Positions 4,724-35,875 are shown, counted from the stretch's first letter. The stretch is DNA of 64,000 nt from Macrostomum lignano (GCA_002269645.1 NIVC01000555.1:183938-247937), one strand, 5' to 3'. Translations and numbers: made by a program. The notes: generated by a model not told the origin, from the sequence alone.

Positions 4724-4776
4724 GAAAAATCCGTGGAAAACCAGTGAAATTTCCGCGGTATTTCCATGGCATTACC
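4724..4776 (+). promoter_or_regulatory. Array of five kappaB/Rel-like motifs at 11-bp spacing upstream of truncated B
   Basis: GAAAAATCC, GGAAAACC, GAAATTTCC, GGTATTTCC and GGCATTACC start at 4724, 4735, 4746, 4757 and 4768. A TATA-like TATATAA is near 4809; a 5'UTR intron GTAAGT near 4915 runs to TTGCAG near 5026. Confidence 0.55.
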
Positions 4777-5035
4777 TTAGTTCCACGTTCCCGCATCAAT
4801 AAATTGAATATATAAGTCTAATGATTTTGGCTGCATAGCACAGACTCTAGCATCATTCACAGCTGTATTTACAAACTCTGCTTTAGGTTCTCAAGTCTTC
4901 GAAATATAACTCAGTAAGTGTTGATATCTAAATGATCTGACTGCTTTGTTTCAGACTTATATTACTATGAAATCGTTTTGATCATGCTGTTATAAATGTT
5001 CTCTTAATGTAAATTTACTATTGCAGTTTTGAGGA

Positions 5036-5371
5036 ATGGCCCAAGGAGAAAATGATTCCTCGTACAACGCTATCCTCGAGTGGCTAAATCCAGCCACCAG
5101 AAATGCTCAATGGATAGCTTCAAATTCAATCCAATTCGCTAATGAACTAAGTGATACCGCATCAAGGGCAAGAAATGAGCTGCTTTCTCTCCCAGATTGC
5201 CCCTGCGAGGTAGACTGTTTTAGAAAGAGGTTTTTCGGCTCGATGGATGATGCTAAATCATCTGGAAATGAGCTGAAAAGAAGATGCGATGAGCTCTGTA
5301 GAGAATGGAACGACTTTCGAAACGATTTCGACAAATCAAGTAAAGAGAAAAAACAATTTAGCTCAATTTAG
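5036..5371 (+). pseudogene. 3'-truncated copy of gene B (111 aa)
   Basis: Homologous to the N-terminus of 12002-12883; breaks at KKQFSS at the duplication junction, before the hydrophobic hairpin. Confidence 0.9.
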
Positions 5372-5424
5372 TTGATAAGTATGTACTCATGTACTAAAAA
5401 ACAATTCATTGTTTTATTTCCAGA

Positions 5425-6228
5425 ATGGCCCTCAACGCGCAACAGACTCATGAGCCGTGGCAAAAGTTGGCGATAAAAGTGGCCGATAAAATCTGCAAGA
5501 AATCCGATAGTTTGCGTCAAGATCTCGCCAGACTGAAGACTGAGGTCGCCAGCAAAAACTGGCCCCATGACGTCTTCAGAAATCCGTCCGATGCTGAGAA
5601 CCGCTTTCGTCAGCTTGAGAGCTCCATTGGCGAGTTGTACAGCGCCGCCAGCGCCATGCACCAGACCAACCAGTCGCTGCTGAACACCTGCGAGGAGTTT
5701 ATCGCTCTGCAAAGCCACGAAGCGTCGTCAAACCTTGAAAGGTCCTCCAAGGCTGCCGAGGCTGCTAAAAAGAAGCTGACGGAGATTCAAACATGCGATG
5801 AAAAGAGCATCGAAGCTGGCAGGAAATTTCAGACTGATTCTGGCCGACTGACTGAGGCTTTCACGAAGGCAAAGAACTTCTGCGATGATGAAGCAGAGTT
5901 TATTAAATCTGAAGCTGATTTTCTAGCTTCTCAGGATGTAAGACAACCTCGAGAAAATGGTGCACGACTGCAGGCTTTGCGATCCAACGAAACTCTGCTT
6001 AACAAGTCGATTGAAACTTTGAAGACTATTATTGAACTGCTGCAGAAGCTCAAGGCTCAATCTGGTGAAGTCATTGAGGAAGCTGATAAGCTCAGCCAGT
6101 TTGTAAAAGATACCATGGCCAATATCGACACTGCGATTGGACGGGAATCTCGAGTTGCTGACACTTTAGACACGAAAGAGAAGGAAATACAGCGACTCCA
6201 AGAGCTGCTGCGCAAAGCTTCGAAGTAA
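5425..6228 (+). CDS. Protein A, copy A2 (protein identical to A1)
   Basis: Same 267-aa translation as A1; its own promoter and GTAAGT donor were removed by the junction at 5372. Confidence 0.8.
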   Translation: MALNAQQTHEPWQKLAIKVADKICKKSDSLRQDLARLKTEVASKNWPHDVFRNPSDAENRFRQLESSIGELYSAASAMHQTNQSLLNTCEEFIALQSHEASSNLERSSKAAEAAKKKLTEIQTCDEKSIEAGRKFQTDSGRLTEAFTKAKNFCDDEAEFIKSEADFLASQDVRQPRENGARLQALRSNETLLNKSIETLKTIIELLQKLKAQSGEVIEEADKLSQFVKDTMANIDTAIGRESRVADTLDTKEKEIQRLQELLRKASK

Positions 6229-7012
6229 ATTAATTACTACTACAGTGCTACTGCACTTCTTTACTTCGAATTTCAAGATAAACCGAAAACTTTTAGCTAA
6301 AAAACCTTATATGACATCGCCCTACTATCTTATAATACGACACGATTTAATTGTCAAATATCGAATCCCGTTTTGTCATTAAATATTTGGTTTCTTTCAC
6401 CCTGCTGTGTCGTCGAATCTCATTCTCCGTTTAGCTTTACCTTGCTCGTACTGAAATATGACGCGATGCCACAGTATCAAACCAAGGACCACTGAAGTCA
6501 CTTCGTTAAACTTAAGTAGTCCTTGTATCAAACACCTATAAAATGAATTTTTCCTCAATAAGTGGAGCGAGTTTATATCGTAAACCCAAGCTTAACCCAA
6601 TCAAATTACAAGTACATGTAACATGCAATAAAGCGCGGTGACAAGAAGTCAGAAGAGATCTTATTGTAATTAAAAAATTCCTTGTTTTATTTTCCGTGAA
6701 GGCTTATCATTCTTGTATGCTGGTGGCTGCACCAATGTTTTAAAATCAAATAACGACGAAGACACATGCTCATTTTTTTCGTTCGATAAATGTGCTAAGC
6801 TGACGGCTCAGTGTAGGCGAACATGCAGAGCTTTCAAATGAAAAAATAAAATTCTCCTGTAAATTTTTGGAGCTATAAAAACCGAATATATGGGTCAAGA
6901 AAATAAATTCAAAAACGATAAGCAACTAGATAAATGTACTTAAATCAACTTTAAGCATTACTGTACTCAATAGAACAATACTGTATTTTAATGCATCTCG
7001 GAAGAGATCCAA

Positions 7013-7065
7013 GAAAAATCCGTGGAAAACCAGTGAAATTTCCGCGGTATTTCCATGGCATTACC
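7013..7065 (+). promoter_or_regulatory. kappaB/Rel-like motif array (second tandem copy)
   Basis: Identical to 4724-4776. Confidence 0.55.
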
Positions 7066-7324
7066 TTAGTTCCACGTTCCCGCATCAATAAATTGAATAT
7101 ATAAGTCTAATGATTTTGGCTGCATAGCACAGACTCTAGCATCATTCACAGCTGTATTTACAAACTCTGCTTTAGGTTCTCAAGTCTTCGAAATATAACT
7201 CAGTAAGTGTTGATATCTAAATGATCTGACTGCTTTGTTTCAGACTTATATTACTATGAAATCGTTTTGATCATGCTGTTATAAATGTTCTCTTAATGTA
7301 AATTTACTATTGCAGTTTTGAGGA

Positions 7325-7660
7325 ATGGCCCAAGGAGAAAATGATTCCTCGTACAACGCTATCCTCGAGTGGCTAAATCCAGCCACCAGAAATGCTCAAT
7401 GGATAGCTTCAAATTCAATCCAATTCGCTAATGAACTAAGTGATACCGCATCAAGGGCAAGAAATGAGCTGCTTTCTCTCCCAGATTGCCCCTGCGAGGT
7501 AGACTGTTTTAGAAAGAGGTTTTTCGGCTCGATGGATGATGCTAAATCATCTGGAAATGAGCTGAAAAGAAGATGCGATGAGCTCTGTAGAGAATGGAAC
7601 GACTTTCGAAACGATTTCGACAAATCAAGTAAAGAGAAAAAACAATTTAGCTCAATTTAG
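7325..7660 (+). pseudogene. 3'-truncated copy of gene B (second tandem copy)
   Basis: Identical to 5036-5371. Confidence 0.9.
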
Positions 7661-7713
7661 TTGATAAGTATGTACTCATGTACTAAAAAACAATTCATTG
7701 TTTTATTTCCAGA

Positions 7714-8517
7714 ATGGCCCTCAACGCGCAACAGACTCATGAGCCGTGGCAAAAGTCGGCGATAAAAATGGCCGATAAAATCTGCAAGAAATCCGATAGT
7801 TTGCGTCAAGATCTCGCCAGACTGAAGACTGAGGTCGCCAGCAAAAACTGGCCCCATGACGTCTTCAGAAATCCGTCCGATGCTGAGAACCGCTTTCGTC
7901 AGCTTGAGAGCTCCATTGGCGAGTTGTACAGCGCCGCCAGCGCCATGCACCAGACCAACCAGTCGCTGCTGAACACCTGCGAGGAGTTTATCGCTCTGCA
8001 AAGCCACGAAGCGTCGTCAAACCTTGAAAGGTCCTCCAAGGCTGCCGAGGCTGCTAAAAAGAAGCTGACGGAGATTCAAACATGCGATGAAAAGAGCATC
8101 GAAGCTGGCAGGAAATTTCAGACTGATTCTGGCCGACTGACTGAGGCTTTCACGAAGGCAAAGAACTTCTGCGATGATGAAGCAGAGTTTATTAAATCTG
8201 AAGCTGATTTTCTAGCTTCTCAGGATGTAAGACAACCTCGAGAAAATGGTGCACGACTGCAGGCTTTGCGATCCAACGAAACTCTGCTTAACAAGTCGAT
8301 TGAAACTTTGAAGACTATGATTGAACTCCTGCAGAAGCTCAAGGCTCAATCTGGTGAAGTCATTGAGGAAGCTGATAAGCTCAGCCAGTTTGTAAAAGAT
8401 ATCATGACCAATATCGACACTGCGATTGGACGGGAATCTCGAGTTGCTGACACTTTAGACGCAAAAGAGAAGGAAATACAGCGGCTCCAAGAACTGCTGC
8501 GCAAAGCTTCGAAGTAA
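7714..8517 (+). CDS. Protein A, copy A3 (267 aa)
   Basis: Intact ORF; ends carry A4-type residues, middle is A1-type. Confidence 0.85.
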   Translation: MALNAQQTHEPWQKSAIKMADKICKKSDSLRQDLARLKTEVASKNWPHDVFRNPSDAENRFRQLESSIGELYSAASAMHQTNQSLLNTCEEFIALQSHEASSNLERSSKAAEAAKKKLTEIQTCDEKSIEAGRKFQTDSGRLTEAFTKAKNFCDDEAEFIKSEADFLASQDVRQPRENGARLQALRSNETLLNKSIETLKTMIELLQKLKAQSGEVIEEADKLSQFVKDIMTNIDTAIGRESRVADTLDAKEKEIQRLQELLRKASK

Positions 8518-9238
8518 ATTAATTACTACTACAGTGCTACTGCACTTCTTTACTTCGAATTTCAAGATAAACCGAAAACTTTTAGCTAAAAAACTTAAAT
8601 GGTATCGCACTACAATCTTACAATACGACACTATTTAATTGTCAAACATCGAATCCCGTTTTTTCACCCTGCTTTGTCGTCGAATCTTATTTTCGACTGA
8701 ATATATGACTTAATGCCACAGTATCAAACAGTACAAAATTATTTTTTCTTCAGTAAATTAAGATTCATATCATTAATCCCAGCTCGAAATTATAGGAACG
8801 TGTAGCTATTCGGAATTGAGCGCGATGACAAGAAGAGATCATCTTGCGTTTTGAAATTTCTTTTTTTATTTTCCCGGAAGGCTTATCTACCCTGTATGCT
8901 GGTGGTTGCACCAACGTTTTAAAAGCAGTAGCAACAAAGACACATTTTCCTTTTTATCGTTCGATCAAGGCGTTAAGCGGACGGCTCAGTGTAAAACATG
9001 CAGAACTTTCTGCTTTGAAAAAATTCATTGTACATATACTTTCCTTCAGACGCAATGAAGTTTAATTTAGGCCATTATTCCACACTTTTGGAACTTTCCA
9101 TAGACAAAAGAGTCAATCAGTATATTTTAACCAATAAGCAACGGATGCAAATACGAGAACTCGTATAACTGAAAAGATATCAGGGCCTCACGGCTAGTAG
9201 TCTATGGCCAAAACTGTGTCAAACAAGAAAAACATGTA

Positions 9239-9462
9239 CACCTTTTCACGTTCAATTTTGATCAAAGTCCAGTTCTACAAAAACTAGCGGAAATTCAATT
9301 CAGACAATTCAGACTTGGGCAACAAACCCCCGTTCAAAACATTATGCAACCGAAGCAAGTTTTAGCCATAGACAAAATTGTCCCCAGTCTGAATCGTCTG
9401 AATTGAATTTCTGCTAGTTTTTTTAGAACTGGAGTTTGTTCAAAATTGAACGTGAAAAGGTG
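9239..9462. mobile_element. MITE with about 80-bp TIRs and TA target duplication (Tc1/mariner-like)
   Basis: CACCTTTTCACGTTCAATTTTG... (9239-9319) is the reverse complement of ...CAAAATTGAACGTGAAAAGGTG (9383-9462); TA on both sides. Confidence 0.8.
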
Positions 9463-9741
9463 TAAAAGCTGCATTCATCCATGCATTAAATAAACATGAA
9501 CACAAAACCAGAACAGGAGCAATTAAATGTCACTGTCTATCAACGTTACTGCAGATGTCAAAGACGCCTATTAATTACCCCCAAAATTAAATGTACAGTT
9601 TTCAAAGCGGCAATTTTCGAAAATTCGAGACACATGTGCCTGGGTGTTCATCACTGAAATAATTTAAAGCGAAACTGTTTTTACACCAAAGGAACATTTG
9701 TTCACCAACAAACATTTTCTGATAAATAGACATTCATTTAG

Positions 9742-11100
9742 TTACTCAAACTTACCACTTGAAACTTGCACTTCATTAGCCGGCTTGACTTCGACAGGTG
9801 AGATACCGTCGACACCTGTCTCAATGCGCGGCATGTTTACGCCGTTCGATTGCTTGGGCACCTCGATAGGACGATCTAAGGCCGCGCTTACAGCCGTCGA
9901 CGCTTCAAAAACTGCGCGGTCGCGCTTCCTTGATAGATATCGGCGCACCGTTTTTTCGCTCTTCTGACGGGCGAAGCACATGATATCATTCATTCCATGG
10001 CCAGTCTCGTGCAAGTCCGCGATTCGCGTCACCCGTATACAATGATTTGTATACTTTCGAGATAGATTGCATTGCTTGCTAAGCCGTTTCATCAATGAGG
10101 TGAACCAATTGATACCTCGTACCTGCTGAGATGAAAAACGCAAACAACCCATTGTCTTGTCATTCGGTAGTGCTCTTGGGAGCAAGCAGTCGTCCTTGCG
10201 ATCCGATGGGAGCAGCGAAATGTATTTATTGACCAGGTCCCGCTGCTTCCGATACAGCCTAGCTTGCTTCGGGCGGTCGTCCTTACAACGCGTAGGATCG
10301 GAATTTTGATTCTTTGTAGGCAGTATTGGAAGCGACATATAGGGTCTGCCATCAGCATCCACCTTCGTCAACAGACTGCTTGCTGCCTTCAGTGCCGGCA
10401 TGTGCTCTTGCCCACGCTCTCCAAAAACGTACATAATGAACAATACCTCATCCTGCAACTTCTCAGCGGTACTTCCGTCGAAATATGCTCGCAACTTTGT
10501 TAGATCAGCTTCCTCGATAGCTTCAAATTGCTTGGTAACGCCTCCAGCATTGTGGAATTCCCTCACCTTCACTCTTAGCATGCGATTGGAGCTCGAAAAC
10601 TCTTCTCCGTCAATGAAGTTGATAGAGCGCTTCAGAATTAGGTTAAAGTACCGGTGTATCCCAGCTCTAATGCACACAAGACTTGACGGCGAATACTTTT
10701 CACCGTTCGTCCTCTGCAGACCGAAATAATAATAGCGCAAGTACTCATTCAGCTTCCACACTTCCATCGTCACAGGCGACTCCTCGGTTGTCTCAGAGAG
10801 AAACTTCACGAAAGCCTGCCCATGCCGATTCATCTGGTCCACCGTTGACTTTGGCAGTGACTGAATTTCTACACCATCCATTCTCGAACTCAGGTCCATG
10901 TCGTCGCCCGCCACCTCCGGAAGTTCAGGCAGTTCTTCAGTGCCATGATCGTTCTCAAGCCACTTAATGAAATCACTCAGGGCCTGGTCATCGTGATTTT
11001 CTCCATGCATGCTTATCTCCGACAAAAGTTGCAGCTCGTCCATCTTGACACCATTGAGCGAGTCGACCGGAAGATTTTTCCAATTGATAAGCGCAGGCAT
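9742..11100 (-). CDS. DUF3504 / Crypton tyrosine recombinase (452 aa)
   Basis: YSPSSLVCIRAGIHRY core-binding helix; FGERGQE (R), TKN (K), YTNHCIR (HxxR), ARQKS (GHKS position) and RRY (catalytic Y). Confidence 0.88.
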   Translation of the reverse strand: MPALINWKNLPVDSLNGVKMDELQLLSEISMHGENHDDQALSDFIKWLENDHGTEELPELPEVAGDDMDLSSRMDGVEIQSLPKSTVDQMNRHGQAFVKFLSETTEESPVTMEVWKLNEYLRYYYFGLQRTNGEKYSPSSLVCIRAGIHRYFNLILKRSINFIDGEEFSSSNRMLRVKVREFHNAGGVTKQFEAIEEADLTKLRAYFDGSTAEKLQDEVLFIMYVFGERGQEHMPALKAASSLLTKVDADGRPYMSLPILPTKNQNSDPTRCKDDRPKQARLYRKQRDLVNKYISLLPSDRKDDCLLPRALPNDKTMGCLRFSSQQVRGINWFTSLMKRLSKQCNLSRKYTNHCIRVTRIADLHETGHGMNDIMCFARQKSEKTVRRYLSRKRDRAVFEASTAVSAALDRPIEVPKQSNGVNMPRIETGVDGISPVEVKPANEVQVSSGKFE

Positions 11101-11676
11101 TTTGAAGCTACAAAAACGCGTCCCTTAATATGTCAAGAGTGATAAGAAATGGACATCAATATTGCAAGTTTTCTGTCTATGGTCCAAGTAACCTCTGCAG
11201 ACAACATAGCGAGCAACGTTTAGTCTATGGTCAAGAGAAAAGTGTGGAATAATGACCGCGAAAAAAGTGTAGAATAATGGCCGCAAAAGTGTGGAATAAT
11301 GACTGCGCGCTGAGTGAAAGTATAAATACAATGTATAAATAATGACGCACTGGGACCGCTGATTCTTTGCATTGTTTTTCTGTTTGACGATCCTACAGAC
11401 AATGCATTGTTTGTAGTAATGGATTGTTCTGCATTAAAAATGTGAATAATGATCGTCAAATTGCTAAACAATGCACTTGTGTAGTATGCAACTGAGTTGA
11501 ATAATGGCCAAAACACGAGTGCGCGTAACATAATAACTGAAATATTTTGGTCAAATAAACTAAATTCAGAAACGATAAAAACTAGATAACTATACGTAAA
11601 TCCACAATAAAATCGCAAACATCACTGTACTAAATAGAACTATACTGTACTTTACTGCCTCTCGGAAGGCATCCGA

Positions 11677-11729
11677 GAAAAATCCGGGGGAAACCAGTGA
11701 AATTTCCGCGGTATTTCCATGGCATTACC
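11677..11729 (+). promoter_or_regulatory. kappaB/Rel-like motif array upstream of intact gene B2
   Basis: GAAAAATCC-GGGGGAAACC-GAAATTTCC-GGTATTTCC-GGCATTACC; TATATAAAA near 11759. Confidence 0.6.
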
Positions 11730-12001
11730 TTAGTTCCATGTTCGCGCGTCAATCTGAATATATAAAAATCTAATAATGACTTCGGTTGCAGAGACTCTAG
11801 CATCATTCACAGCTTTATTTACACACCTTACTTCAGGTTTTCAAGTCTTCGAAATATAACTAATGTAAGTCTAAGTGTTTATATCTAAATGATCTGACTG
11901 CTTTGTTTCAGTATTTATTTGATTTTGCTATGAATTTTTTTATCAAGAACTTACAAATATTTTTGTAAACTTTTCGTAATTTTCTATTGCAGTTTTGAGA
12001 A

Positions 12002-12883
12002 ATGGCTGAAGGAGAAAATGGATACTCGTACGACGCTATCGTTGATTGGCTAAATCCAACCACCCAAAATGCAAGGTTGATAGCTTCAGATGCAAGCGAA
12101 TTCGCTTGTAAACTACGTAGTACGGAAAGAAGCGCAAGAAATGAGCTGCTTGGTCTTCCAGATTGCCCTTATAGGGTAGACTTTCTCGACTCGATGGACA
12201 ATGCAAAATCTTCTGGAGATGAGCTGAAAAGAAGATGCGAAGAGCTCTGTAGAGAATGGAACGACTTTTCTCAAAAATTCGAAACATCAAGTAAGGAGAA
12301 AAAACAATTTAGCTCCGCCGAATTGGACAAGCTGTTGGAAGATATGAATAAACTTTTGAAAATGTGTGCCGCTTGCGGACAACAATATTCTGAGACTCAA
12401 GAGAAATTAAACACAGCCATCAATGACTGCTCCCACTTAGTTGATGAGCTAGCGAAGGAAGCGGACCGCAAGAGAAAAGAGGAATCCGACAGAAAACTTA
12501 TGGGCTACGGTGCAGCAGTCGTTGGCTTTGGTGCAGCTGTGGCGACTGCTGGCGCGACTGCTCCAGCGATGTTTGCCTCTGGAAGCCTGACAACGGCCTC
12601 CGTAGGCACCGCTGCTTGGACTAAGGTTACGTCCGATGCTCTTGGTAGTCTCTCTGACAAGTTTAGCAAAGCTCGCAGAAACATGAACGAGACGCTTCGG
12701 CGTCTGAATGAACTGTCTAACTTGATTGCTAAACTTGAGAGATCGACTAAAGAAATGGCGAGAAATATCGAAATCGGAAGGGGCAGAGAGCGGAGAGTGA
12801 GAGATACGATACGTAGTAAGGAACAGGAAATCGAGAAACTGAAAGAGCAACTCCGAAAAGCTGGAATTTCGATGGATGATTGA
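12002..12883 (+). CDS. Orphan helical protein B, intact copy B2 (293 aa) with central hydrophobic hairpin
   Basis: Helical N-part, 42 uncharged residues (LMGYGAAVVGFGAAVATAGATAPAMFASGSLTTASVGTAAWT, 12497-12622), then a C-terminal coiled coil; no signal peptide. Confidence 0.85.
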   Translation: MAEGENGYSYDAIVDWLNPTTQNARLIASDASEFACKLRSTERSARNELLGLPDCPYRVDFLDSMDNAKSSGDELKRRCEELCREWNDFSQKFETSSKEKKQFSSAELDKLLEDMNKLLKMCAACGQQYSETQEKLNTAINDCSHLVDELAKEADRKRKEESDRKLMGYGAAVVGFGAAVATAGATAPAMFASGSLTTASVGTAAWTKVTSDALGSLSDKFSKARRNMNETLRRLNELSNLIAKLERSTKEMARNIEIGRGRERRVRDTIRSKEQEIEKLKEQLRKAGISMDD

Positions 12884-15218: not shown

Positions 15219-15270
15219 CCCTCAAGACCAAGTCGAGACTCAAATAGCTGCGAATTAAAATATTCAAGCC

Positions 15271-15785: not shown

Positions 15786-17031
15786 TGTAGCGGCTCGCCT
15801 AAGGCTGTGCGAGCGAGTAAAGAAAGTCCACTTGCCAGGCCTCAAGTTCGGCCTGGCTTCTCAATTTGAGCGTCTATTTGGGCCATAGATATAAAAGTAA
15901 GAGAGGCATTTAGGCAAAGCTCTGCAGTCCGCATTATGTTAATAAGTTGGCGGCTGTGGACCGCCACATAGCTCCCCCCAGAGCTTTACTAAATGTGCCT
16001 CATTGTATGGAACCATTGCGCTGCAGGGCACTGATCTGACAGGTTGCGTGCAGATGCAGACTTAGTCACAGTGGTGCCGGATTGACTGACCCAGGTTGAC
16101 GGAAAGGTGGCCAGCATGCAGACGCGTCCAGTGTCGAGCCCTGTGCGCCAGCAGAATGTCAACTGCGGGGGCGATGCAGCGTGGAACTTCGTACGCTGGC
16201 AAAAGGACGCCGGGATGCGGTCGCGGGACTGTAATGCCGATGGCGGGGCCGATAGCGGTCGCGCACGACTATGATGGCGGTGTATGCACTGTCAGTGCCT
16301 TGCCAAGATCTTATGCCCGCTGCACCACTAGGGACGGAACAAATGGGCGCTGCAGTCGCACGCGAGTCGGTGGCCGAGCAAGCGGCTACGGCCTTGACGA
16401 AGGCGACAGCAGTCACCGGGCAGAAACGCTGAACCGGCGGGACCCCAGGATGGGGCGGCGAGAATGTTGCCAGTCATGCAGAAGGCACCCACTCGGGACG
16501 ACACACCGCCAGGCAGTAGCGGATGGGGCTGGGGGAAACTGAGGAGCTCACGGCAGCAGCTCAGGACCCCCATGTGGCGCTATGTGCTGCGGCTGTCGAG
16601 AGTCGGAGGCCGGGCAGGCGGCTACGGCCGTGACATAGGCGGCAGCGGATGCCGGCCAGAAACGCTGGACCGGCGGTGGCCCGGCGCGTGCGTCGTGGAG
16701 CTGGTGTTGGCAGCGCCAGCGTAGAAAGCCAGATGGAGGCTGCAGACGGATGGCCGTCTGCTCTAATGGGCGCTGATGTCCTCTGTGCTGCGTGCCGCGT
16801 CCGCGGGGTTGGCCCGCCGCAAGCGGCGGCGGGAGTCGGGCTCAACAATGTAGCGGCTCGCCTAAGGCTGTGCGAGCGAGTAAAGAAAGTCCACTTGCCA
16901 GGCCTCAAGTTCGGCCTGGCTTCTCAATTTGAGCGTCTATTTGGGCCATAGATATAAAAGTAAGAGAGGCATTTAGGCAAAGCTTTGCAGTCCGCATTAT
17001 GTTAATAAGTTGGCGGCAGTGGACCGCCACA
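15786..17031 (-). mobile_element. Non-autonomous Ty3/Gypsy LTR element (TRIM-like, CsRn1-clade-like)
   Basis: 183-bp LTRs at 15786-15968 and 16849-17031 (TG..CA, 2 mismatches); 4-bp TSD GACT. On the minus strand there is a PPT GGGGGGAG and a degenerate tRNA-Trp-like PBS TGTTGAGCCCGAC. Empty sites near 407 and 25037. Confidence 0.92.
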
Positions 17032-17344
17032 GACTGCTCCCCCAGCTGCACTGGCGGTGCGTTAAGATCGCACTTTTACGACATGCTGGATGGCTAACAC
17101 TTTCGGGCTTGTAGGTCCTTGGATTTTCGTTGGCGTTCGATTTTGTACGATCGCTATTGATCTGCACTGAATATCCTTGTCGCTGATGCAGTCTCTGCGC
17201 AAGGAAATTTATACTGTATGTGTGCACAGTGTATCTCTTCCAAGAGAGCTAGAGAGCTAGACGGACTTTCATCAAACTTAACCAAAAATTTTTAATCGTC
17301 AATAACCATTTATTCATTCATCTTTACATATTTGTTCTGTGTCA

Positions 17345-17835
<491 letters not shown>

Positions 17836-19627
17836 ACAAGTGTCTGTGTGTTTAGCTGGACCTCAGAAGTTTTAATGCATTACATGGACCACCGACTCTT
17901 TTACTTTTAATAGAGCCTTTTTTAGTTCACGAAAGATCTTCAAAAGTTTGTTTATTTTTGAAGCTGACAGAGGCTCTCATTAGTGGAAATTGCACCAGTA
18001 TTTTTATTACTTAAACTGGACCGGTTTATATGGACACCGACAGAACGTGTTTTAGGTGAACCTTCACACCGATTCAAAATCATAGACCAAATTTAGCGTA
18101 AACCTAACACTGTCAGCTAAGGTTAAACACAGATGGAGGCAATTGGAAATAATCGATTTAACGTAAAGGAAACAATTTTAAAGAAACACAAAACATTGAA
18201 ATTTTTTTTGCCGGATTCGTTGATCCTGCTCCTCGGATTCTCGAAGGCCGTATAAATCCTGATTAGCAAAATAGTCGAACACTTGTAGATTTTCAGAAAA
18301 AATTGGTCCACCCCGACGGCTTGCATCCCCAATAACAACTGGATTTTGCCGTGATTTAATGCAAATGATCCTGCCGCATTAGCTGAGTTGGCTCGACTAG
18401 CAATATAGCCGCGGTCACGTAAATAGTCTCGAACCTCTAGTAGACTGATATTTGGAATTCCGATGAGCCTTGTTTTTGCAACATCGTCATCGGCAGAGCA
18501 AAAGCCAGAATATGCACTGGCTGCGGTAGCCATTTTTTGCATCGCACATCCCCGTGGCAACTCCACTGTTGCCGATATGTTCGAAATGGACATTTCCGAA
18601 CAGTTCGCAGGTGTTGAAATTGAGACGACGAAGTCCACCTATGAAATTAATCAAATTACATAAAATACTTTGTACGAGTATAACGTTCAGGATAATGCAA
18701 TCAAATTGTTCTATCATTAGGATTAAGAAGCGTTAAAAGATACACTCGAATACGCTCACTTAAATTGATACCAACAATAGAATTAAAAAACAACTCAACG
18801 TTTAGTACCAAAACTAACTTCGACAACAAAAAATACTAAAGTCGCTTCCCTGATTTGAAAAAAAAACGAAGCAATAGTGCCACCAAAATACTTCACGCCT
18901 TCTTCACATAGCCGATCACGGTTAAAAGCCTTTGGATATGCGAAAAAAACTTTTTGTCTTGGAACCAATTCGTTGAAAACTCGTTTCTGCTGTCGACTGC
19001 CTAAAATGTAATAAGTACCACTAAAAACATACAAAGCAAAACAAAAGGGAAACATTCTTATACTATTCACAGGCACTACATTTCAATTTATTTAAAAGAG
19101 ATAATCAGAACTCGCGGAATATCGGACCTTAAGAGAGTCTGGGAATGAGAGCTTATAAGCTGGACCCCAGATCAGGGCACCATCTTAAACTGACTGCGTC
19201 TGTCTGTTGGTGTCACGGTGTGTTAGCTGGACCCCAGATCGGGGCACCATCTTAAACTGACAAGATAATTCAATTATATCACAAGATAAGATCACGCTCC
19301 GTCGTCGCTACTTCCAGTAGTCTTTCATCCATGTGGTCTGAAAACCAGAGTGATGAAAACCTACAGCTCAGTTGCTAGCGAAAGAGTCAGACGTCTTGCT
19401 ATAACGAAAACGAATAAAAAGTTTAGATCAAATTACAAGGCGTCATTTTTTGAGGCAAAGTACCAGGGTGAGAGTAGCTGTGTACCAAAGCATCAGGTTA
19501 TAATGAGCAACGAGAATTATTCACATTTAACGCTTGGCAATCAGGCTGCTGTTATTTAGCCTCTCTTTCTCTCGCATAGAGATTCGCCAATCTTCTTCTT
19601 AATGCCGCACTGAAAAAAACAGTCTAG

Positions 19628-20423: not shown

Positions 20424-20767
20424 TGCTGATACAGTTGAGTAGAGCAGACGAGCTGTAAGAACCGCTGTTAAGAGGTAGATTAAATCATGCAATTTCATTT
20501 TTTTGAAAGTAGAAAAGATCATCTGGCGATTAGAAAATTTCTTGTTTTATATTTTCCTAGAAGGCTTACGCTCGTATCTTTCCTCTATGCATGGTTGCAC
20601 CGATGTTTTAAAAACATTAGCAACAGAAACGCATACCGGTAAGTAAATTAAATTCAGAGACGATATATATCGAAATAAATATACCAAAATCCCCTTTAAA
20701 ATCGCAAACATCACTGTATACTCAATAGAACTGTACTGTACTTTACTGCATCTCGGAAGACACACGA

Positions 20768-20820
20768 GAAAAATCCGGGGAAAACCAGTGAAATTTCCGC
20801 GGTATTTCCATGGCATTACC
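20768..20820 (+). promoter_or_regulatory. kappaB/Rel-like motif array upstream of B3
   Basis: Includes GGGGAAAACC (20777-20786), a Dorsal/Rel-type consensus, plus the invariant ATTTCCGCGGTATTTCCATGGCATTACC block. Confidence 0.6.
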
Positions 20821-21103
20821 TTAGTTCCATATTCGCGCGTCAATCTAAATGTATAAAAATCTACGATTAATAATGTACGTATAATAGTGATTTCGGTTGC
20901 AGAGACTCTAGCATCATTCACAGCTTTATTTACATACCTTGCTTCAGGTGCTTAAGTCTTCGAAATATACCTCAGTGAGTGTTTATATCGAAATGATCTG
21001 ACTGCTTTGTTTCAGTACTCGTATTTGTTTTTCCTATGAAATTGTTTTATCATGCACTTAGAAACGTTTTCCTAATGTAAATTTACTATTGCAGTTTTGA
21101 GGA

Positions 21104-22016
21104 ATGGCCCAAGGAAAGAATGATTGTTCGTACAACGGTATCCACGAGTGGCTAAATCCAGCCACCAAAAATGCAAGGTTGATAGCTTCAGATTCAAGCA
21201 AATTCGCTTGTGAACTGCGTAGTACGGAAAGAAGCGCAAAAAAGGAGCTGCTCTCTCTCTCATACTGCAGCCCTTACAGCGTGGACTTTAGTAGACAGAG
21301 GTTTCTCAACTCGATGGACGGTGCGAAATCTTCTGGAGATGAGCTGAAAAGTAAATGCGATGCGCTCTGTAAAGAATGGAAAAAAATTTGCCAATGATTA
21401 CGCTAAATCAAGCAAAGGGAAAAAAGAATCCGCCGAATTGGACAAGCTGTTGGAAGATGTGGATAAACTTTCGGAAAAATGTGCCGCTTGCAGACAGCAA
21501 TATTCTGTGACTCAAGAGAAATTAAACACCGCCATCAATGACTGCTCCCTCTTTGTTAAAGAGCTAGCGAGGGAAGCGGACCGCAAGAGAAAAGAGAAAT
21601 CTGCCAGAAAACGTAAAGGCAACTTTGCAGCTCTCGTTAGCTTTGGTGCAGCTGTGCTTGGTAGGCTCTCTGACAAGTTTAGAAAAGATCGCGGAAGCAT
21701 GAAAACGATGCGTCGGTGCCTGATGCAACTGTCTAACTTGATTGCTAGCCTTGAGAGATCGACTAAAGACATGACGAGAAGCATCGAAAACGGAAGAAGG
21801 GAGAGAGTTAAAGATACGACACGTAGTAAGGAGCAGGAAAATAAGAAACTGAAAGATACGATACGTAGTAAGGAGCAGGAAAATGAGAAACTGAAAGATA
21901 CGATACGTAGTCAGGAGCAGGAAAATGAGAAACTGAAAGATACGATACGTAGTAAGGAGCAGGAAAATGAGAAACTGAAAGAGCAACTCCGAAATGCTGG
22001 AATTTCAGATGACTGA
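21104..22016 (+). pseudogene. Gene B copy B3: +1 frameshift in an A7 run, in-frame hairpin deletion, 4x 42-bp C-terminal repeat
   Basis: ORFs 21104-21397 and 21360-22016 join if one A is removed from 21380-21386. GAAV is joined directly to LGRLSDKF. KDTIRSKEQENEKL-type repeat x4 at 21810-21977. Confidence 0.8.
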
Positions 22017-23583
22017 TCAAATTTTCACACCAAAAACTGACTAAAGCCTGCGAATTGGCTCTGCACACTATTGACTAATAGATTGCGAATACAGTTAACA
22101 TTTTCTACTACCCTTTATGCATGGAAAAAGTGATCTTTTTAGCTACGAGTGTTTGAATAATTTTTGTAATTGGTATTGTATTTGTTCTAATTACGCGATA
22201 GTTGGCTGTATCAACTGCATATACCTGTACTACTGCCTACAATGTTTGCAATATTCAAGCTATCAGTAAGTGAAGTAGCTGGCCAGCTGCGGATAATGCA
22301 ACATAATTTAAATTTCAGTATCGATTAGTTTTCTTCTGGTGACTTTTGAACTGCAATTTACTCCCTATCAATATCCCTATATTTACTCCCTTAGAATATT
22401 GTGCTAGCAATTTAGCTTCACTTACTTTGGGGGACTGTACCATATCGCCTTGGGGAACAGTCTCGTCTCAGCTGGAAAACTACGTGTACTATACCTATAC
22501 CATTAATTATCCAATGCGATCCCGCAGTTGGTATCGTAGAAGCAGTGTTTTATTGCAGTCTTTGTCCGTTCATCGTGTACTCTTTAGTTTCGTTATTTTT
22601 GGCAAATGCATTGCCGCTTCATTTTATTGTCTATGTCCCAACCTGGCGTATCTCTGTAAGCCTAGAACCATAAGAATTCTGGTTGCCTTTAGTTGCACAA
22701 TACAAGCTGCTGCACGGCCTTGCCTGATCAAGGCTAAAGCGTTTTCTTATTCTTTCAAAAGTGCAGTCAGTTCATGACACTATTTTTCTATATTTCCTTG
22801 ATAGACAGGCATGTTTACTCATTAGTCAGAGTAAACAGGTAGAAATTTTAGGCCGGCTCCTTTACTCAAGGATTTGCTGATCAAGTGCTACTCACGCTAG
22901 ACAATGTAAATTACATCCTTGAGCAGTGATGATCTCCTAAGTAGCAGGTATGAGGGGGATTTTCGGAAATTGTTTCCACTTCCTCTATAATGCCAATAGT
23001 TTTGCATTTAGTATTCCAAAAAGAAATAAAAATGGGAGTCGACTTTGTTAAAAAAAAACGTTCCCCCATAATCCCATTAATTCTATCTGTACTATCCCCA
23101 AAGAATCGCATTGTTCAAACTTCATTCGATTGTCTGCCCAAAGCCAGATCCCAACAGCTTTCAACCACCAGTACGCCAGGCTGTCGCCAGGTTTAGGCTC
23201 AGCGGAGACGGAGAGGATGAGTTTTGGGAGAGAGTACGCAGAGAGAAGCTTGCCCGGAAGTAGAAACAGACAGAATTGAACAGCGAAGGCTATTCCTAAA
23301 GTAAGGCAATTGTACTCTCCACCTTTCTACCTGCTGAGCCAGCAGAGGCTGTATCGATTTCTCTGACTTAGCATCCCCTCAGCAGCGGTCGCAGTCCCCA
23401 ACGCTTGCGTCCATTTTTAAGCGTTGGGAATTTCTCTTTTACGCTTGCGAGCCATTGAGCTAGCATCTCACAAAGGCGCTTCTGTTGATTGGGTTAACAA
23501 GTTGAAGCCGAACCAGATATTGCAAGAACCAGATACTGCAGTATGCAATATTGCATTGAAGCTGTCATGACAAGTATTGTGCC

Positions 23584-24368
23584 TTTCTGTCTACTTATAG
23601 TAAAGCAACATCAAAATGCTCCTATTTTATGATTTCAATGCTGCAAGTATCCGATAATACAGTATTCGTTTTTGTGCAGAGAAGCTCTCATGACAACTAC
23701 TATACGTTTTTGTCTACTTATAGTAAGGCGATGTTAAAATGCTCCTATTTTATGATTACAATGCTGCAAGTATCCGATAATACAGTATTCGTTTTTGTGC
23801 AGAGAAGCTCTCATGACAACTACTATACGTTTTTGTCTACTTATAGTAAGGCGATGTTAAAATGCTCCTATTTTATGATTACAATGCTGCAAGTATCCGA
23901 TAATACAGTATTCGTTTTTGTGCAGAGAAGCTATCGTGACAACTACTATACGTTTTTGTCTACTTATAGTAAGGCGATGTTAAAATGCTCCTATTTTATG
24001 ATTACAATGCTGCAAGTATCCGATAATACAGTATTCGTTTTTGTGCAGAGAAGCTCTCATGACAACTACTATACGTTTTTGTCTACTTATAGTAAGGCGA
24101 TGTTAAAATGCTCCTATTTTATGATTACAATGCTGCAAGTATCCGATAATACAGTATTCGTTTTTGTGCAGAGAAGCTCTCATGACAACTACTATACGTT
24201 TTTGTCTACTTATAGTAAGGCGATGTTAAAATGCTCCTATTTTATGATTACAATGCTGCAAGTATCCGATAATACAGTATTCGTTTTTGTGCAGAGAAGC
24301 TATCGTGACAACTACTATACGTTTTTGTCTACTTATAGTAAGGCGATGTTAAAGTGCTCCTATTTTAT
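23584..24368. repeat. 123-bp tandem repeat, about 6 copies
   Basis: Near-identical units; source of the 41-aa periodic ORF 23629-24435. Confidence 0.95.
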
Positions 24369-25333
24369 GCCAGATTCTTTGCCAACTTTAATATCACATT
24401 CTCTCAATGACTCAAACTGCAGAGAAATCTCATGAATTTCTTTACTACTCAAGACAACTCTCTCTTCACTTCAATTGGGTTTCTCTACCAACATCTGACC
24501 ACCATCAGCAGAGATGGTATGTCTGTTCTTCTCCCTCAAGACCAAGTCGAGACTCAAATAGCTGCGAATTAAAATATTCAAGCCTCTAACAATATCAGCT
24601 GTATTTGGCGCTAAAAACCAACCCTCTTTGTAAAATTTTACCTCAAAAGCCAACTCCCTGTACCATATTGGGTTTTACAATGGATAGAGATAACGTTATC
24701 GTAAAAGTATAAGTATCGATAAGGATACTGTGTCGTTTCAAAACCCTATCTCTGCATCCTTATGAATTTGTAAGGATCACTCTGATCGCAGTCAGATTAT
24801 AAGTTATGAACAGTTTTTTGTCTGGTTAACTCTGTGTCAAAAATTTTTCTTTTGGTAAAATAACATTTTCAAAGAAGTAGTTATAAGCATCCACAGTCTG
24901 CATTACCTAAATAGCTCCAGAACGAGTTGGCAGCAGTCTAAACAGCCGATGCAGAAGTAGCTCAGACAGGAGCAGCCTCCGACCGTAGCAGCAATTCAGC
25001 TGCAAGTTGGTACTGCTGGGTCGGCCAGCTCAAACTGCGACTGCTCCTCCAGCTGCACTGGCGGTGCGTTAAGATCGCACTTTTACGACATGCTGGATGG
25101 CTAACACTTTCGGGCTTGTAGGTCCTTAGATTTTCGTTGGCGTTCGATTTTGTACGATCGCTATCGATCTGCACTGAATATCCTTGTCGCTGTTGCAGTC
25201 TCTGTGCAGGGAAATCTATTTCTACTGTATGTGTGCACAGTAAGTCTCTTCCAAGTCTTGCTCATTTCCATACTAAGAGCCAGTAAGTGCTACTGCAATC
25301 AGCCTTTTATCAGGCTAGTTCAAACTCACGCTG

Positions 25334-25365
<32 letters not shown>

Positions 25366-25380
25366 GACAGACAGACAAAC

Positions 25381-25479
<99 letters not shown>

Positions 25480-25502
25480 AAGACAGACAGACAGACAGAA
25501 AG

Positions 25503-25597
<95 letters not shown>

Positions 25598-25665
25598 CAC
25601 AGACAGACACACAGACAGACTGACACGCAGACAGACGGACAGACAGACAGACGGACAGACAGATG

Positions 25666-25717
<52 letters not shown>

Positions 25718-25766
25718 CACACACAGACAGACACACAGACAGACAGACACGCAGACAGACACGCAG

Positions 25767-25808
<42 letters not shown>
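25334..25808. repeat. (ACAG)n microsatellite
   Basis: Paralog of 701-1229 with the same flanks. Confidence 0.97.
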
Positions 25809-27468
25809 GACACCATACAAATATACAAACGACACTTAAGTAGTCTCTGAGAGTGTACTTCAGTGTATTGTTGTGTAGAGTACTATAGTTGCGCAGTAAT
25901 GTTTAGTACAATGGTCTGTATAAGCAATAATTGGAAATAAAAGTACGCGGTGATTGTTCAATATTAAATAGACTAGATTGAATCAGTCAGGGCTTGAAAA
26001 GGTTGGCAATATCCAGGCCACACTCAAGACACGCCAAGCAGATGTGGATGCAGCAGCAGACGTTTTCCAGAGTCTCCATCTTGCTCGTCTCTGATTTTGT
26101 GTCCTCCACTGAAGTTGCAATGATTTTCTCCCGATCTGACGAGCCTGCAGGCTGATCCAGCGTTGCGTCATGAGGTGATTCGAAGACCGCCTTGTTCATG
26201 TCTTTCGAGTTTTTCATTTCAGTAGCTTTGCAGCGTCTCTTGGCAGCGAATGCCATTTATAGACTCTTCCCAATCGTCAGTTTAAATGTATTCACAACGC
26301 GAAGTTGCCTCACTTTGCCAGTACAGCAAGCCAGGTCGTGTACATACATGTAGTAGAGCTTATCACTAGGCATTATAGATAAGTTTTGTGACTTTTTTTT
26401 GGCGTACGTTGGTGACACTTCGGCTAAAAATACTTTGAATGAGCCAAGCCATTTATTTCGGCCATGATAATAAACATACTTTTAAAAAAGCAACTTTTTT
26501 GCTGAAAGCAAAATTTGCACTCTCGTTCATGCATGCTGAAATGATATGCCGTACGGAGCGCATGATATGCAGTGTGATGCAGCTCTCCCTAATATACGAG
26601 CGTATAGTAGTGTTGTAATTAGAATGTCGTGAATGTCTGTTCTTGGAGATTTAACGCTTTCCTTAGATATTTGACACTGTTCTTGTGTTCTTGGAGATTT
26701 GACACTGTTCTTGTAGATGTGACCTCCTTGGAGATTTGACGCTACTGCCACTGTCAGAAGTTACCGCTTTGGGCTTTTGACATTTTCAAATGTTGAGACG
26801 ACAACAGACCAGCAGCTATCTAGGAGTTTAACAGTAATTCCCTCGCCGCTAAGTAAAGAGCCCTAACTTTGACACAGAAGGCTACTCTGCCCAGAATATT
26901 AGTCTCGTAAACGCCACTTTAACTCGGGTTCCTTTTGGCACACCATGCGGCTGCTTGAAGCAAACTGTTCCAAGCAAACCAGCAGCTGGAGCATGGCTAG
27001 CTTCTCCCTGCGCGTGACGGGACTCTCAGTAATTAATCACTGTTTTCATTGCTTTGAAAACATATTGAGAATTCATTTTGAAACGACTGTTCTGAAATAT
27101 CAGTAATGTATATGGAATCAGTCATGCAAACTTTTAATAATTTACGAGGTACGCTACAGCTTTTTAGCTGAAGAAAGGTAACGTAAAACGTCACTAGCTA
27201 CTTACATGAGTAGAACGTGCTGATGCATGCTGATTCATATCACTTAAAAAAATAAAAGCGGTGGTTGTACTTAAAATTCCAAATTAATGTACATTTTCAA
27301 TTGTTTCCCTCAATCTTCATTAATTTTCCTTAAGTGAAATTACTCTAAGCAATGTTAAACAAGCTAGGTTTTGAGACTAAAGAATATTATTAATCAGAAA
27401 AGCATGGAATCAGTTTGTTGTCAGCTACGATAGTAAGGCCCTGGCCCTGATTCGCTAGAGCCTGAAAA

Positions 27469-27488
27469 GGTTTTTCCGCGGAATTTCC
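27469..27488 (+). promoter_or_regulatory. Paired kappaB/Rel-like motifs upstream of A4
   Basis: GGTTTTTCC-GC-GGAATTTCC, identical to 2915-2934. Confidence 0.5.
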
Positions 27489-27689
27489 TTTTGAACGCAG
27501 TTTAAACATCTGGCTGCAGGAAAAGCTGCTATTTCTTCCCGCGGGCAGAACTCAGTCCAGCTTCTCAAACCCTAAATTTCAGTCTATAGAAACCTTTAGG
27601 TAAGTTTAGATGATGAAGTACCCTACCTACCTTCTTTTGATAAGTATGTACTCATGTACTAAAAAAAAATTCATTGTTTTATTTCCAGA

Positions 27690-28496
27690 ATGGCCCTCAA
27701 CGCGCAACAGACTCATGAGCCGTGGCAAAAGTCGGCGATAAAAATGGCCGATAAAATCTGCAAGAAATCCGATAGTTTGCGTCAAGATCTCGCCAGACTG
27801 AAGACTGAGGTCGCCAGCAAAAACTGGCCCCATGACGTCTTCAGAAATCCGTCCGATGCTGAGAACCGCTTTCGTCAGCTTGAGAGCTCCATTGGCGAGT
27901 TGTGCAGCTCCGCCAGCGCCATGCACCAGTCCAACCAGTCGCTGCTGAACACCTGCGAGGAGTTTATCGCTCTGCAAAGCCACGAAGCGTCGTCAAACCT
28001 TGAAAGGTCCTCCAAGGCTGCCGAGGCTGCTAAAAAGAAGCTGACGGAGATTGAAGCATGCGATGAAAAGAGCATCGAAGCTGGCAGGAAATTTCAGACT
28101 GATTCTAGCCGACTGACTGAGGCTTTCACGAAGGCGAAGAACTTCTGCGATGACGAGGCAGAGTTTATTAAATCTGAAGCTGATTTTCTAGCTTCTCAGG
28201 ATCTAAGACAACCTTCTCGAGAAGATGATGCGAGACTACAAGCTTTGCGATCCAACGAAACTCTGCTTAACAAGTCGATTGAAACTTTGAAGACTATGAT
28301 TGAACTCCTGCAGAAGCTCAAGGCTCAATCTGGTGAAGTCATTGAGGAAGCTGATAAGCTCAGCCAGTTTGTAAAAGATATCATGACCAATATCGACACT
28401 GCGATTGGACGTGAATCTCGAGTTGCTGACACTTTAGACGCAAAAGAGAAGGAAATACAGCGGCTCCAAGAACTGCTGCGCAAAGCTTCGAAGTAA
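27690..28496 (+). CDS. Protein A, copy A4 (268 aa)
   Basis: Intact ORF with one extra codon (QPSREDD); own upstream region and 5'UTR intron retained. Confidence 0.85.
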   Translation: MALNAQQTHEPWQKSAIKMADKICKKSDSLRQDLARLKTEVASKNWPHDVFRNPSDAENRFRQLESSIGELCSSASAMHQSNQSLLNTCEEFIALQSHEASSNLERSSKAAEAAKKKLTEIEACDEKSIEAGRKFQTDSSRLTEAFTKAKNFCDDEAEFIKSEADFLASQDLRQPSREDDARLQALRSNETLLNKSIETLKTMIELLQKLKAQSGEVIEEADKLSQFVKDIMTNIDTAIGRESRVADTLDAKEKEIQRLQELLRKASK

Positions 28497-29159
28497 ATTA
28501 TTTACTGCAGTGCTACTGTACTTTCTACTTCGAATTTCAAGAAGATAAACCTAACATTTTAGCTACAAAACTTAAAGGGACATCGCACTACTATCTTATA
28601 ATACGACTCTATTTAATTTTAGAATATCGAAACCCGTTTTGTCGTTAAATAGTTCACGTTTCTTTCAACCTGTTAAGTCGTCGAATATACATGTACGAGC
28701 TATAACGCAATGCCGCAGTATCAAACACTACAAAATGAATTTTTCTCAATAAATGGAGCGAGTTAATGTCATTAACCCAAACTCCAAATTCTATGTGCAT
28801 GTAATATGCAATGACAAGAAGAGATCATATTTGGGATTTGAGAATTTCTTGGCTTATATTTTCCGTTAAGGAAATCTTCTCTGTATACTGGTTGCACCAA
28901 CGTTTTAAAATCAATAGCGATGAAGACACATACTCATTTTTCTCGTTCGATCAAGAAGCTGACGGCTCAGTGTAGAACATGTAGAGCTTTTAAATTGAAA
29001 AAGAAATTGCTTCCTTTGGAGATATTCTGAAGCAATTTTGAAAATAGTTAGGTCTAGTGTACTAAATTCAGAAGCGATAAACAACTAGATAAATATACTT
29101 AAGTTCACTTTAAAGTCGTACATTAGCAATTCTAGAAAACTGTTGTTGAAAACAACCAA

Positions 29160-29212
29160 GAAAAATTCACGGAAAAGCTTTGGAATTTCCGCGGTATTTC
29201 CATGGCATTACC
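29160..29212 (+). promoter_or_regulatory. kappaB/Rel-like motif array upstream of B4
   Basis: Includes GGAATTTCC (29182-29190) and the invariant GGTATTTCC-ATGGCATTACC. Confidence 0.6.
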
Positions 29213-35157: not shown

Positions 35158-35279
35158 TGCTGGGAGGTTTGGAGAGAGTAATGAATGAATCGATCAATCA
35201 AATCGATCATCAATCTATCAATCAATCAGTCAATAAAGCCACATAAAATCTATTGACCAAGAGGTCCATTAATTTATAA

Positions 35280-35875
<596 letters not shown>

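Follow-up and report, generated by a model that had tools for sequence, protein, structure and literature searches.

Which transcription factors drive the inducible defense and stress genes of flatworms is an open question, and the Rel-homology domain (RHD) genes of planarians are very divergent (PMC13563047). This question takes a concrete form in a 64,000-nucleotide stretch of the Macrostomum lignano genome (GCA_002269645.1 NIVC01000555.1:183938-247937; hereafter the window, i.e., the whole stretch analyzed), which holds a tandem cluster of two types of open reading frame (ORF), A and B, with a compact array of 11-bp units upstream of every B copy. The original prediction took these units for kappaB (kB)/Rel-like sites and proposed that a Rel-homology factor co-induces A and B as immune or stress effectors. 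Our analysis suggests that the array is very probably a functional cis-regulatory element, i.e., a selectively maintained, promoter-proximal, helically phased homotypic enhancer through which the expression of A and B would be linked. That a Rel-homology factor of the GGAA-half-site type reads it is a tentative proposal, which has to be set against several other candidate readers.

The anatomy of the array is best seen in B1, where in an 11-bp register it runs GGAAGAGATCC AAGAAAAATCC GTGGAAAACCA GTGAAATTTCC GCGGTATTTCC ATGGCATTACC TTAGTTCCACG TTCCCGCATCA. The five motifs originally picked out at about 11-bp spacing are read directly at 4724 (GAAAAATCC), 4735 (GGAAAACC), 4746 (GAAATTTCC), 4757 (GGTATTTCC), and 4768 (GGCATTACC). 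A logo of 30 units pooled from six copies has G at position 3 throughout (30/30), G (21) or A (9) at position 4, and A at position 6 in 28 of the 30 units. Only A (12) and T (18) occur at position 7, all but one of the 30 units have A or T at position 8 (T 18, A 11, C 1), and C occupies positions 10 and 11 in 27 and 26 units, respectively. This composition defines a quasi-palindrome of 9 bp, GG-N5-CC with an A/T center (approximately GGAAWWTCC), followed by a 2-bp spacer. Its periodicity is marked, with an autocorrelation in B1 of 0.59 at lag 11 versus roughly 0.2-0.35 at other lags; none of 20,000 shuffles of the B1 array reached 0.59 at any lag from 5 to 23. The register is kept with zero indels in all seven type-I copies, and their flanks are indel-rich. 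With similar units repeated at a fixed distance close to one turn of the helix, the array is a helically phased homotypic cluster.

The predicted recurrence of the array holds as well. The 32-mer ATTTCCGCGGTATTTCCATGGCATTACCTTAG occurs exactly at 4749, 7038, 11702, 20793, and 29185 (chance expectation, 0.00), which places the array starts at 4724, 7013, 11677, 20768, and 29160. Identity of the core in all five B copies, as originally claimed, is exact, with two restrictions: B1 and B2 are a recent duplicate, 99-100% identical, and count as one observation, so that the window offers four independent B promoters rather than five, and the addition of B8, from outside the window, cuts the universally invariant core from 32 to 22 nt. 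Each array comprises five to eight tandem 11-bp units spanning about -130 to -45 relative to the inferred start site, and it ends some 10-20 bp upstream of a TATA-like box, in the position first described. The TATA-like box downstream, the leader splice signals, and a jump in conservation near 4826-4840 together suggest that the array lies upstream of the transcription start.

Two further elements accompany the arrays. A second, weaker conserved block (AAATTCA.AAACGATA...CTAGATAAAT.TAC) lies about 100 bp upstream of the array in type-I B promoters, at about 4612-4650 in B1 and at the equivalent position in B3, B4, and B5. By eye, an E2F-like TTCCCGC(G) or TTCGCGCG directly follows the array in B1, B3, B4, and B5 (4787-4795 and 29223-29231) and is also found downstream of the A motif (about 2975-2990); it is missing in B6 and B8.

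Whether the array is maintained by selection was assessed with paralogous loci added from a second contig (L002, with B6 and B7) and from the contig of the window itself, 10-26 kb upstream of it (L003, with B8, A5, and B9). Seven B copies from two contigs, six of them independent, were aligned from -520 to +330 around the ATG (850 aligned bases). The invariant fraction among the six independent copies is 0.78 in the array versus 0.12 far upstream and 0.15 in the indel-rich TATA region; it amounts to 0.55 in the leader exon, 0.41 in the intron, and 0.60 in the coding sequence (CDS). The array is better conserved than the genes' own coding sequence. Its 22-mer TTTCCGCGGTATTTCCATGGCA is the longest invariant run in the alignment, the runner-up being 14 nt at the splice acceptor and ATG and the best run within the CDS 10 nt. 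Only 1 of 20,000 column shuffles reached a 22-nt run, and 0.03 such runs are expected at the CDS invariance rate. Since synonymous divergence (dS) among B3, B5, B6, and B8 is 0.13-0.22, the B copies compared are not fresh duplicates, and a conversion tract of just 22-32 bp, common to copies from two contigs, is not a credible explanation of the identity. Judged from this alignment, the array is real and helically phased, and purifying selection maintains it.

These data bear directly on the neutral alternative, in which the array is a decayed 11-bp minisatellite without regulatory function, and its identity between copies a result of recent duplication or gene conversion. Micro- and minisatellites do abound in the window, two identical adjacent units in B7 show slippage, and B1, B2, and B9 are indeed recent copies, 99-100% identical (99.6% between B9 and B1). 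However, the independent copies combine the dS quoted above with flanks that are only 12-15% invariant, the invariant island is only 22-32 bp long and common to copies on two contigs, there is no copy-number or indel variation, and both the excess of conservation over the CDS and the column shuffles speak against it. A purely neutral origin is thus very improbable. Slippage may still have its place in a selected array, as unit duplication is likely the way in which such arrays grow: new units would arise by slippage, as with the identical B7 pair, and selection would afterwards keep unit spacing and sequence.

Selection might also act on nucleic acid structure, i.e., a DNA hairpin or cruciform or a fold in an upstream transcript, rather than on protein-binding sites. 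The 88-nt array does fold better than its shuffles (z = -2.3; 4 of 200 shuffles equally good). Yet none of the 22 predicted pairs has a compensatory change across six arrays, the covariation term is unfavorable, and the window returned no Rfam match. The symmetry arises simply from the order of the units, GGAA-rich ones coming 5' of those rich in TTCC, and the block sits upstream of the TATA-like box. All in all, a structural role is extremely unlikely.

If the array is an enhancer, the question becomes which promoters share it. A1 and A4 carry the composite motif GGTTTTTCC-GC-GGAATTTCC attributed to them in the original prediction, and TTTCCGCGG[A/T]ATTTCC is common to A and B promoters. The A promoter also carries TTTCCGCGGAATTTCC, 15/16 identical to the type-I core. 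All occurrences of TTTCCGCGGWATTTCC in the window lie at the promoters of the five B copies and of the two free-standing A copies (0.03 expected), and this promoter restriction holds in the other loci too. The B7 protein is 56% identical to the other B proteins (dS about 0.5), and the B7 array, GAAATTCCAC GGAAAAGCCGT GGAAAAGCCGT GGAATTTTCTC GAAATTTTCAG, lies directly upstream of the TATA-like TTAAATATA and has a lag-11 autocorrelation of 0.60. B7 keeps the unit type, the phasing, and the pre-TATA position with different letters, a pattern that has the appearance of binding-site turnover under selection. Homology of the A promoter extends over about 330 bp of the B7 promoter but does not include the remaining B promoters; the unit type is present in two unrelated promoter backbones. 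Upstream, A (window 2585-2890) and B7 (L002 9345-9620) have in common about 300 bp of conserved sequence, arranged in several blocks of 70-90% identity. This stretch is missing from the other B promoters and could be further regulatory sequence or a shared repeat.

The motif in the A promoters that is related to the B array makes it reasonable to infer that A and B are under shared control. This much of the proposed co-induction by a Rel factor stands, and the array appears to be common to a cluster, specific to Macrostomum, in which gene pairs in the order A-B are duplicated in tandem. In mechanistic terms, several dimers of one GGAA/TTCC-recognizing factor would sit side by side on one face of the helix, and their cooperation would produce a switch-like joint induction of both genes. 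We infer factor binding, cooperativity, and inducibility, as well as the identity of the factor and the use of the TATA-like box and start site.

As to that factor, the best-fitting single class would be Rel-homology proteins of the RelA, c-Rel, or NFAT-dimer type. RelA, c-Rel, and NFAT-type dimers use 9-bp sites of the GGAA-W-TTCC class, built from 4-bp GGAA half-sites with no need for GGG. A 9-bp GG-N5-CC site with an A/T center is present and conserved here, and such half-sites would fit the reported absence of p50/p105 from Platyhelminthes (PMC11432056). In planarians, seven divergent RHD genes are known alongside a conserved NFAT5, and the one RHD gene tested was not linked to the immune read-out used (PMC13563047). 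Eight promoters (B1, B3-B8, and A1) were scanned against 4,000 background 85-mers from the same window. Each of them has one to three matches to GGNNTTTCC (background rate, 0.000 per 85 bp), and 10 of its 13 matches in the window lie at A/B promoters. The near-exclusive A/T at unit positions 7 and 8 also slightly favors a Rel-type register. In common with the kB/Rel-type clusters in the proximal promoters of inducible immune genes, the array consists of 9-bp GG-N5-CC quasi-palindromes with an A/T center, present in several copies within about 100 bp of the TATA box and including GGAATTTCC in B5 and A, and joint induction of a tandem gene family is its likely output. To our knowledge, units abutting at a strict 11 bp with 2-bp spacers are denser than in described kB clusters.

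Several observations weigh against the Rel assignment. The kB consensus GGGRNWYYCC, on which the original prediction rested, has no match in the eight promoters and a single one in the whole window (38878, away from the A/B promoters) versus 3.9 expected, and no array unit fits it. The Dorsal-type GGGWWWWCC occurs in B4 (GGGAAAACC) and in none of the other seven promoters, and the NFAT5-type TonE sequence TGGAAANNYNY was not found in any of the eight. GGNNTTTCC and the unit patterns were chosen after the data had been seen. Variants that approach the consensus do exist, as first described (GGGGGAAACC in B3, GGGGAAAACC in B4, and GGAATTTCC in B5), but the best kB-like unit differs between copies, GGAATTTCC itself being confined to B5 and A, and the most invariant units (GGTATTTCC and GGCATTACC) are off the ideal half-site. 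If the array were just a series of degenerate dimer sites, its spacers would not be expected to be invariant, and the invariance of all 22 contiguous bases, spacers included, suggests overlapping or composite sites or a different reader. Lastly, the same array yields TTCC-NN-GGAA palindromes, in perfect STAT-type form with 4-nt spacing in A, B7, and B8 and with 3-nt spacing in B5.

This last point follows from the design of the array, as tandem 9-mers with 2-bp spacers necessarily generate both TTCC-NN-GGAA (STAT-like) palindromes and repeated GGAA (ETS- or NFAT-like) cores. The functional sites might therefore be the junction palindromes, forming a tandem and partly weak row of STAT-type sites resembling gamma-activated sequence (GAS) elements, on which dimers or tetramers would assemble cooperatively after cytokine-like or double-stranded RNA (dsRNA)/stress signaling. 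Tandem weak sites about one helical turn apart favor cooperative STAT binding, and the array has weak tandem sites at about that distance. Perfect palindromes occur in A (TTCCGCGGAA), B7 (TTCCACGGAA), B8 (TTCGCGGGAA), and B5 (TTCACGGAA), as TTC-N4-GAA in A1, B7, and B8 and as TTC-N3-GAA in B5, against a background of 0.035-0.06 perfect sites per 85 bp; the one in A slightly favors STAT. The invariant core itself contains two near-palindromes, TTCCGCGGTA and TTCCATGGCA, and a planarian STAT homologue exists and is induced in the dsRNA response (PMC8797187). Half of the promoters (B1, B3, B4, and B6), however, have no perfect TTC-N3/4-GAA, the second half-site of the invariant core is GTA or GCA instead of GAA, and the A/T preference at positions 7 (30/30) and 8 (29/30) is not required by STAT. 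The GGTA and GGCA "defect" of the invariant units is common to the Rel and STAT readings. On this balance a STAT-type reader is unlikely.

The repeated cores suggest yet other readers, either monomeric GGAA binders (ETS-type or NFAT-like) on the minus-strand GGAA(A/T) cores or a lineage-specific multi-finger protein or multi-factor complex on the whole 22-mer. TTCC or TACC occurs seven times on one strand, each array has two to four GGAAA cores versus 0.21 in the background, and the 22 invariant bases with their spacers suit a long contiguous or overlapping recognition surface; by eye, an E2F-like TTCCCGC or TTCGCGC also comes after the array in several copies and in A. On the other hand, no array has more than one or two matches to the ETS consensus CGGAAR/MGGAAR, the base after GGAA is mostly A and not the preferred G, and B7 retains the architecture without the 22-mer, which argues for a grammar at the level of the unit rather than for one long site. 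Jointly, these options are doubtful, if a little less so than STAT. Sequence alone cannot choose among the Rel/NFAT, STAT, and ETS readings.

Heat shock factor (HSF) acting on a heat-shock element (HSE) array (nGAAnnTTCnnGAAn) is a candidate with a precedent in the same species. HSEs, taken as at least three alternating nGAAn/nTTCn blocks, are functional in the long terminal repeat (LTR) promoters of M. lignano retrotransposons and are a tested example of short motif arrays that drive strong induction (PMC12801592). They resemble the A/B arrays in their alternating GAA/TTC blocks just upstream of the TATA box. One canonical trimer (GAATTTTCTCGAA) occurs in B7 and a dimer (GAAATTTC) in B1, B3, and B4. 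There is, though, no canonical trimer in A or in any B promoter except that of B7; moreover, not even the dimer is present in B5, B6, and B8, and the 11-bp period is off the 5-bp or 10-bp register of HSEs. HSF is a most improbable reader of the array.

Three further consensus elements were considered and rejected: that of IRF (GAAANNGAAA), absent or present as a single copy in the promoter scan; an RFX X-box (GTTGCCATGGCAAC-like) for TTTCCATGGCAT, in which both half-sites are off-consensus (by eye); and E2F for TTCCCGC, as the element is missing in B6 and B8 (by eye). Our literature search retrieved no paper linking Macrostomum to NF-kB binding sites, and the gene identifiers Mlig004740 and Mlig013860 do not occur in searchable papers or supplements.

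The 299-aa B5 protein is encoded letter-perfect on contig NIVC01000555.1, and several papers identify the assembly as Mlig_3_7, from the free-living flatworm M. lignano. The genes downstream of these promoters (Table 1) share one layout in both gene types: the promoter is followed by a short leader exon without coding sequence, which ends at a GTAAGT donor, and by a small intron whose acceptor is placed 1-9 nt upstream of the ATG; the leader-exon splice signals are conserved in all copies. The A-then-B order is repeated in A5-B9, A1-B1, A2-B2, and A4-B5. B1 and B2 are chimeras in which the B promoter, the leader exon, and a 111-aa N-terminal ORF ending in a stop precede the final 52 nt of the A intron and an intact A ORF, with the junction near 5364/5372. 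This 2289-bp chimeric unit is tandemly duplicated at 99-100% identity (span, 3083-8666). The 100% identity of 3083-4711 and 5372-7000 reflects either a very recent duplication or an assembly artifact. In such units A could be expressed from a B-type promoter if the donor of the B leader (4914) were spliced to the acceptor of A (5423-5424). The frame breaks of B4 and B9 may mark pseudogenes or long-read indel errors of the assembly.

Table 1. Coordinates of the A/B cluster and of the satellite tracts (window positions, unless locus L003 is named)
Feature	Position	Strand	Remarks
A1 promoter motif	2915..2934	+	GGTTTTTCC-GC-GGAATTTCC; contains the perfect 10-bp palindrome TTCCGCGGAA
A1 ORF	3136..3939	+	267 aa; ATG 3136
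B1 promoter array	4711..4798	+	eight 11-bp units; invariant 22-nt core 4750-4771
B1 TATA-like box	4809-4816	+	TATATAAG; called from sequence only
B1 leader exon (predicted, untranslated)	4840..4913	+	exon start inferred from the jump in conservation
B1 intron		+	donor GTAAGT at 4914; acceptor AG 5025-5026; ATG 5036
B1 ORF (truncated)	5036..5371	+	111 aa; A2 ORF follows 53 bp on
A2 ORF	5425-6228	+	ATG 5425
B2 promoter array	7000..7087	+	identical to B1; inside the 2289-bp tandem duplicate
B2 TATA-like box	start 7098	+	
B2 ORF (truncated)	7325-7660	+	same as B1; ATG 7325
A3 ORF	7714-8517	+	ATG 7714
B3 promoter array	11664..11751	+	
B3 TATA-like box	start 11759	+	
B3 ORF (full length)	12002..12883	+	293 aa; ATG 12002
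B4 promoter array	20755..20842	+	
B4 TATA-like box	start 20850	+	
B4 ORF	21104..22016	+	ATG 21104; two frames, break near residue 94; pseudogene or assembly indel
A4 promoter motif	27469..27488	+	same as A1
A4 ORF	27690-28496	+	ATG 27690
B5 promoter array	29147..29234	+	with GGAATTTCC and the perfect TTCACGGAA
B5 TATA-like box	start 29242	+	
B5 ORF (full length)	29512..30411	+	299 aa; ATG 29512
A5	L003 12977-13780		
B9	L003 14878-15778		frame break near residue 172
Satellites (1)	560-1270, 17032-17839, 23629-24435, 25287-25850, 31491-32126		
Satellites (2)	35124-35700, 50335-51400, 53031-53800, 54265-55400, 57493-59400		

What A and B encode bears on whether they could be effectors. A homology search for A in a collection of 5.8 billion proteins returned no protein, not even A itself, which means that A is unannotated; its dN/dS of about 0.3 among copies indicates that it is nevertheless probably a real gene. 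B evolves fast (dN/dS, 0.45-0.9). A word-indexed homology search for B found only M. lignano paralogues, and a second one with a broad alignment added little. An exhaustive profile search yielded nine remote relatives (E, 2e-15 to 8e-4), all with a central Gly/Ala-rich hydrophobic hairpin. Pfam gave nothing above threshold for A, B, or the remote relatives, one of which has a faint Bacillus_HBL match. Neither A nor B has an N-terminal signal peptide. The AlphaFold (AF2) model of B5 (predicted local distance difference test [pLDDT], 77) has long helices at 10-50, 57-102, 110-181, and 208-292, with a low-confidence hydrophobic Gly/Ala-rich hairpin segment at 175-212. A is modeled (pLDDT, 75) with the same four-long-helix topology without the hairpin, and sequence similarity between A and B is detectable solely over the 42 C-terminal residues (hhalign probability, 91%).

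The best natural PDB matches of both models are components of alpha-pore-forming toxins of the ClyA superfamily. These Foldseek matches are weak (E of about 0.01, none below 1e-3; template modeling score, 0.4-0.65), and a profile search of PDB sequences retrieved only generic coiled coils, with Hbl L1 (E, 0.08) among them. The likeness to members of this superfamily (ClyA, AhlB/AhlC, SmhB, YaxB, MakA/E, and Hbl-B) lies in a size of about 270-300 residues, a four-long-helix bundle, and the hydrophobic hairpin of 35 residues that connects helices 3 and 4 of B. The B5 model shows the long-helix bundle with a hydrophobic hairpin at one tip. Moreover, a hairpin-less A encoded beside a hairpin-bearing B recalls bi- and tripartite ClyA-type systems, and in one remote relative (L004, 240-2458) a paralogue with the hairpin is likewise immediately preceded by one without it. 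That contig has a single strict kB match, which falls in the intergenic promoter region, a weak result expected by chance in 21 of 200 cases. A and B differ from the superfamily in their animal origin and in having no sequence-profile link to it; we found no paper on ClyA-like proteins in animals. With the ClyA likeness weak and a signal peptide lacking, A and B are a lead, and only a lead, as immune or stress effectors. An animal two-component ClyA-like pore-forming pair, jointly induced through the array by a divergent flatworm Rel-homology factor, is an improbable combination.

The rest of the window is rich in repeats. Between A3 and B3, a minus-strand ORF of 452 aa (9742-11100, -) has a weak QRICH1 Pfam match (E, 0.037) only and, by eye, a C-terminal tyrosine-recombinase-like (HxxR...Y) motif; it may be a Crypton-like element or a domesticated derivative. 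Adjoining it, about 230 bp (9237-9464) are 78% identical to the reverse complement of the stretch itself. At 15786-17031, an insertion of 1.25 kb, GC-rich (about 54%) and set between 195-bp direct repeats (15786-15978 and 16849-17043, 97% identical), does not occur in the paralogous segments 1-1206 and 24574-25820 and resembles a small terminal-repeat element. The density of micro- and minisatellites is very high; they include (CAGA)n-type runs in 8-nt and 12-nt steps and repeats of 15, 23, 24, 25, 28, and about 129 bp. Some show extreme GC skew (0.43 at 36-38 kb and 0.57 at 58-60 kb), and many create long spurious ORFs.

For flatworm biology, the array offers a strongly constrained and compact sequence of 22-32 bp that is usable as bait for its binding factor. 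It is also a mutable element for reporter assays, which already work in M. lignano, the flatworm in which promoter mutagenesis in vivo is routine (PMC12801592), and a candidate inducible promoter for transgenesis. The analysis further brings to notice an uncharacterized, fast-evolving, and lineage-restricted gene pair with a pore-former-like predicted fold. Should the array be an ordinary tissue-specific enhancer, the value of the finding would be local, as better annotation of one gene cluster. If, instead, both the pore-forming pair and the Rel reading were true, the A/B cluster would represent the first defined Rel-type enhancer/effector module in Platyhelminthes.

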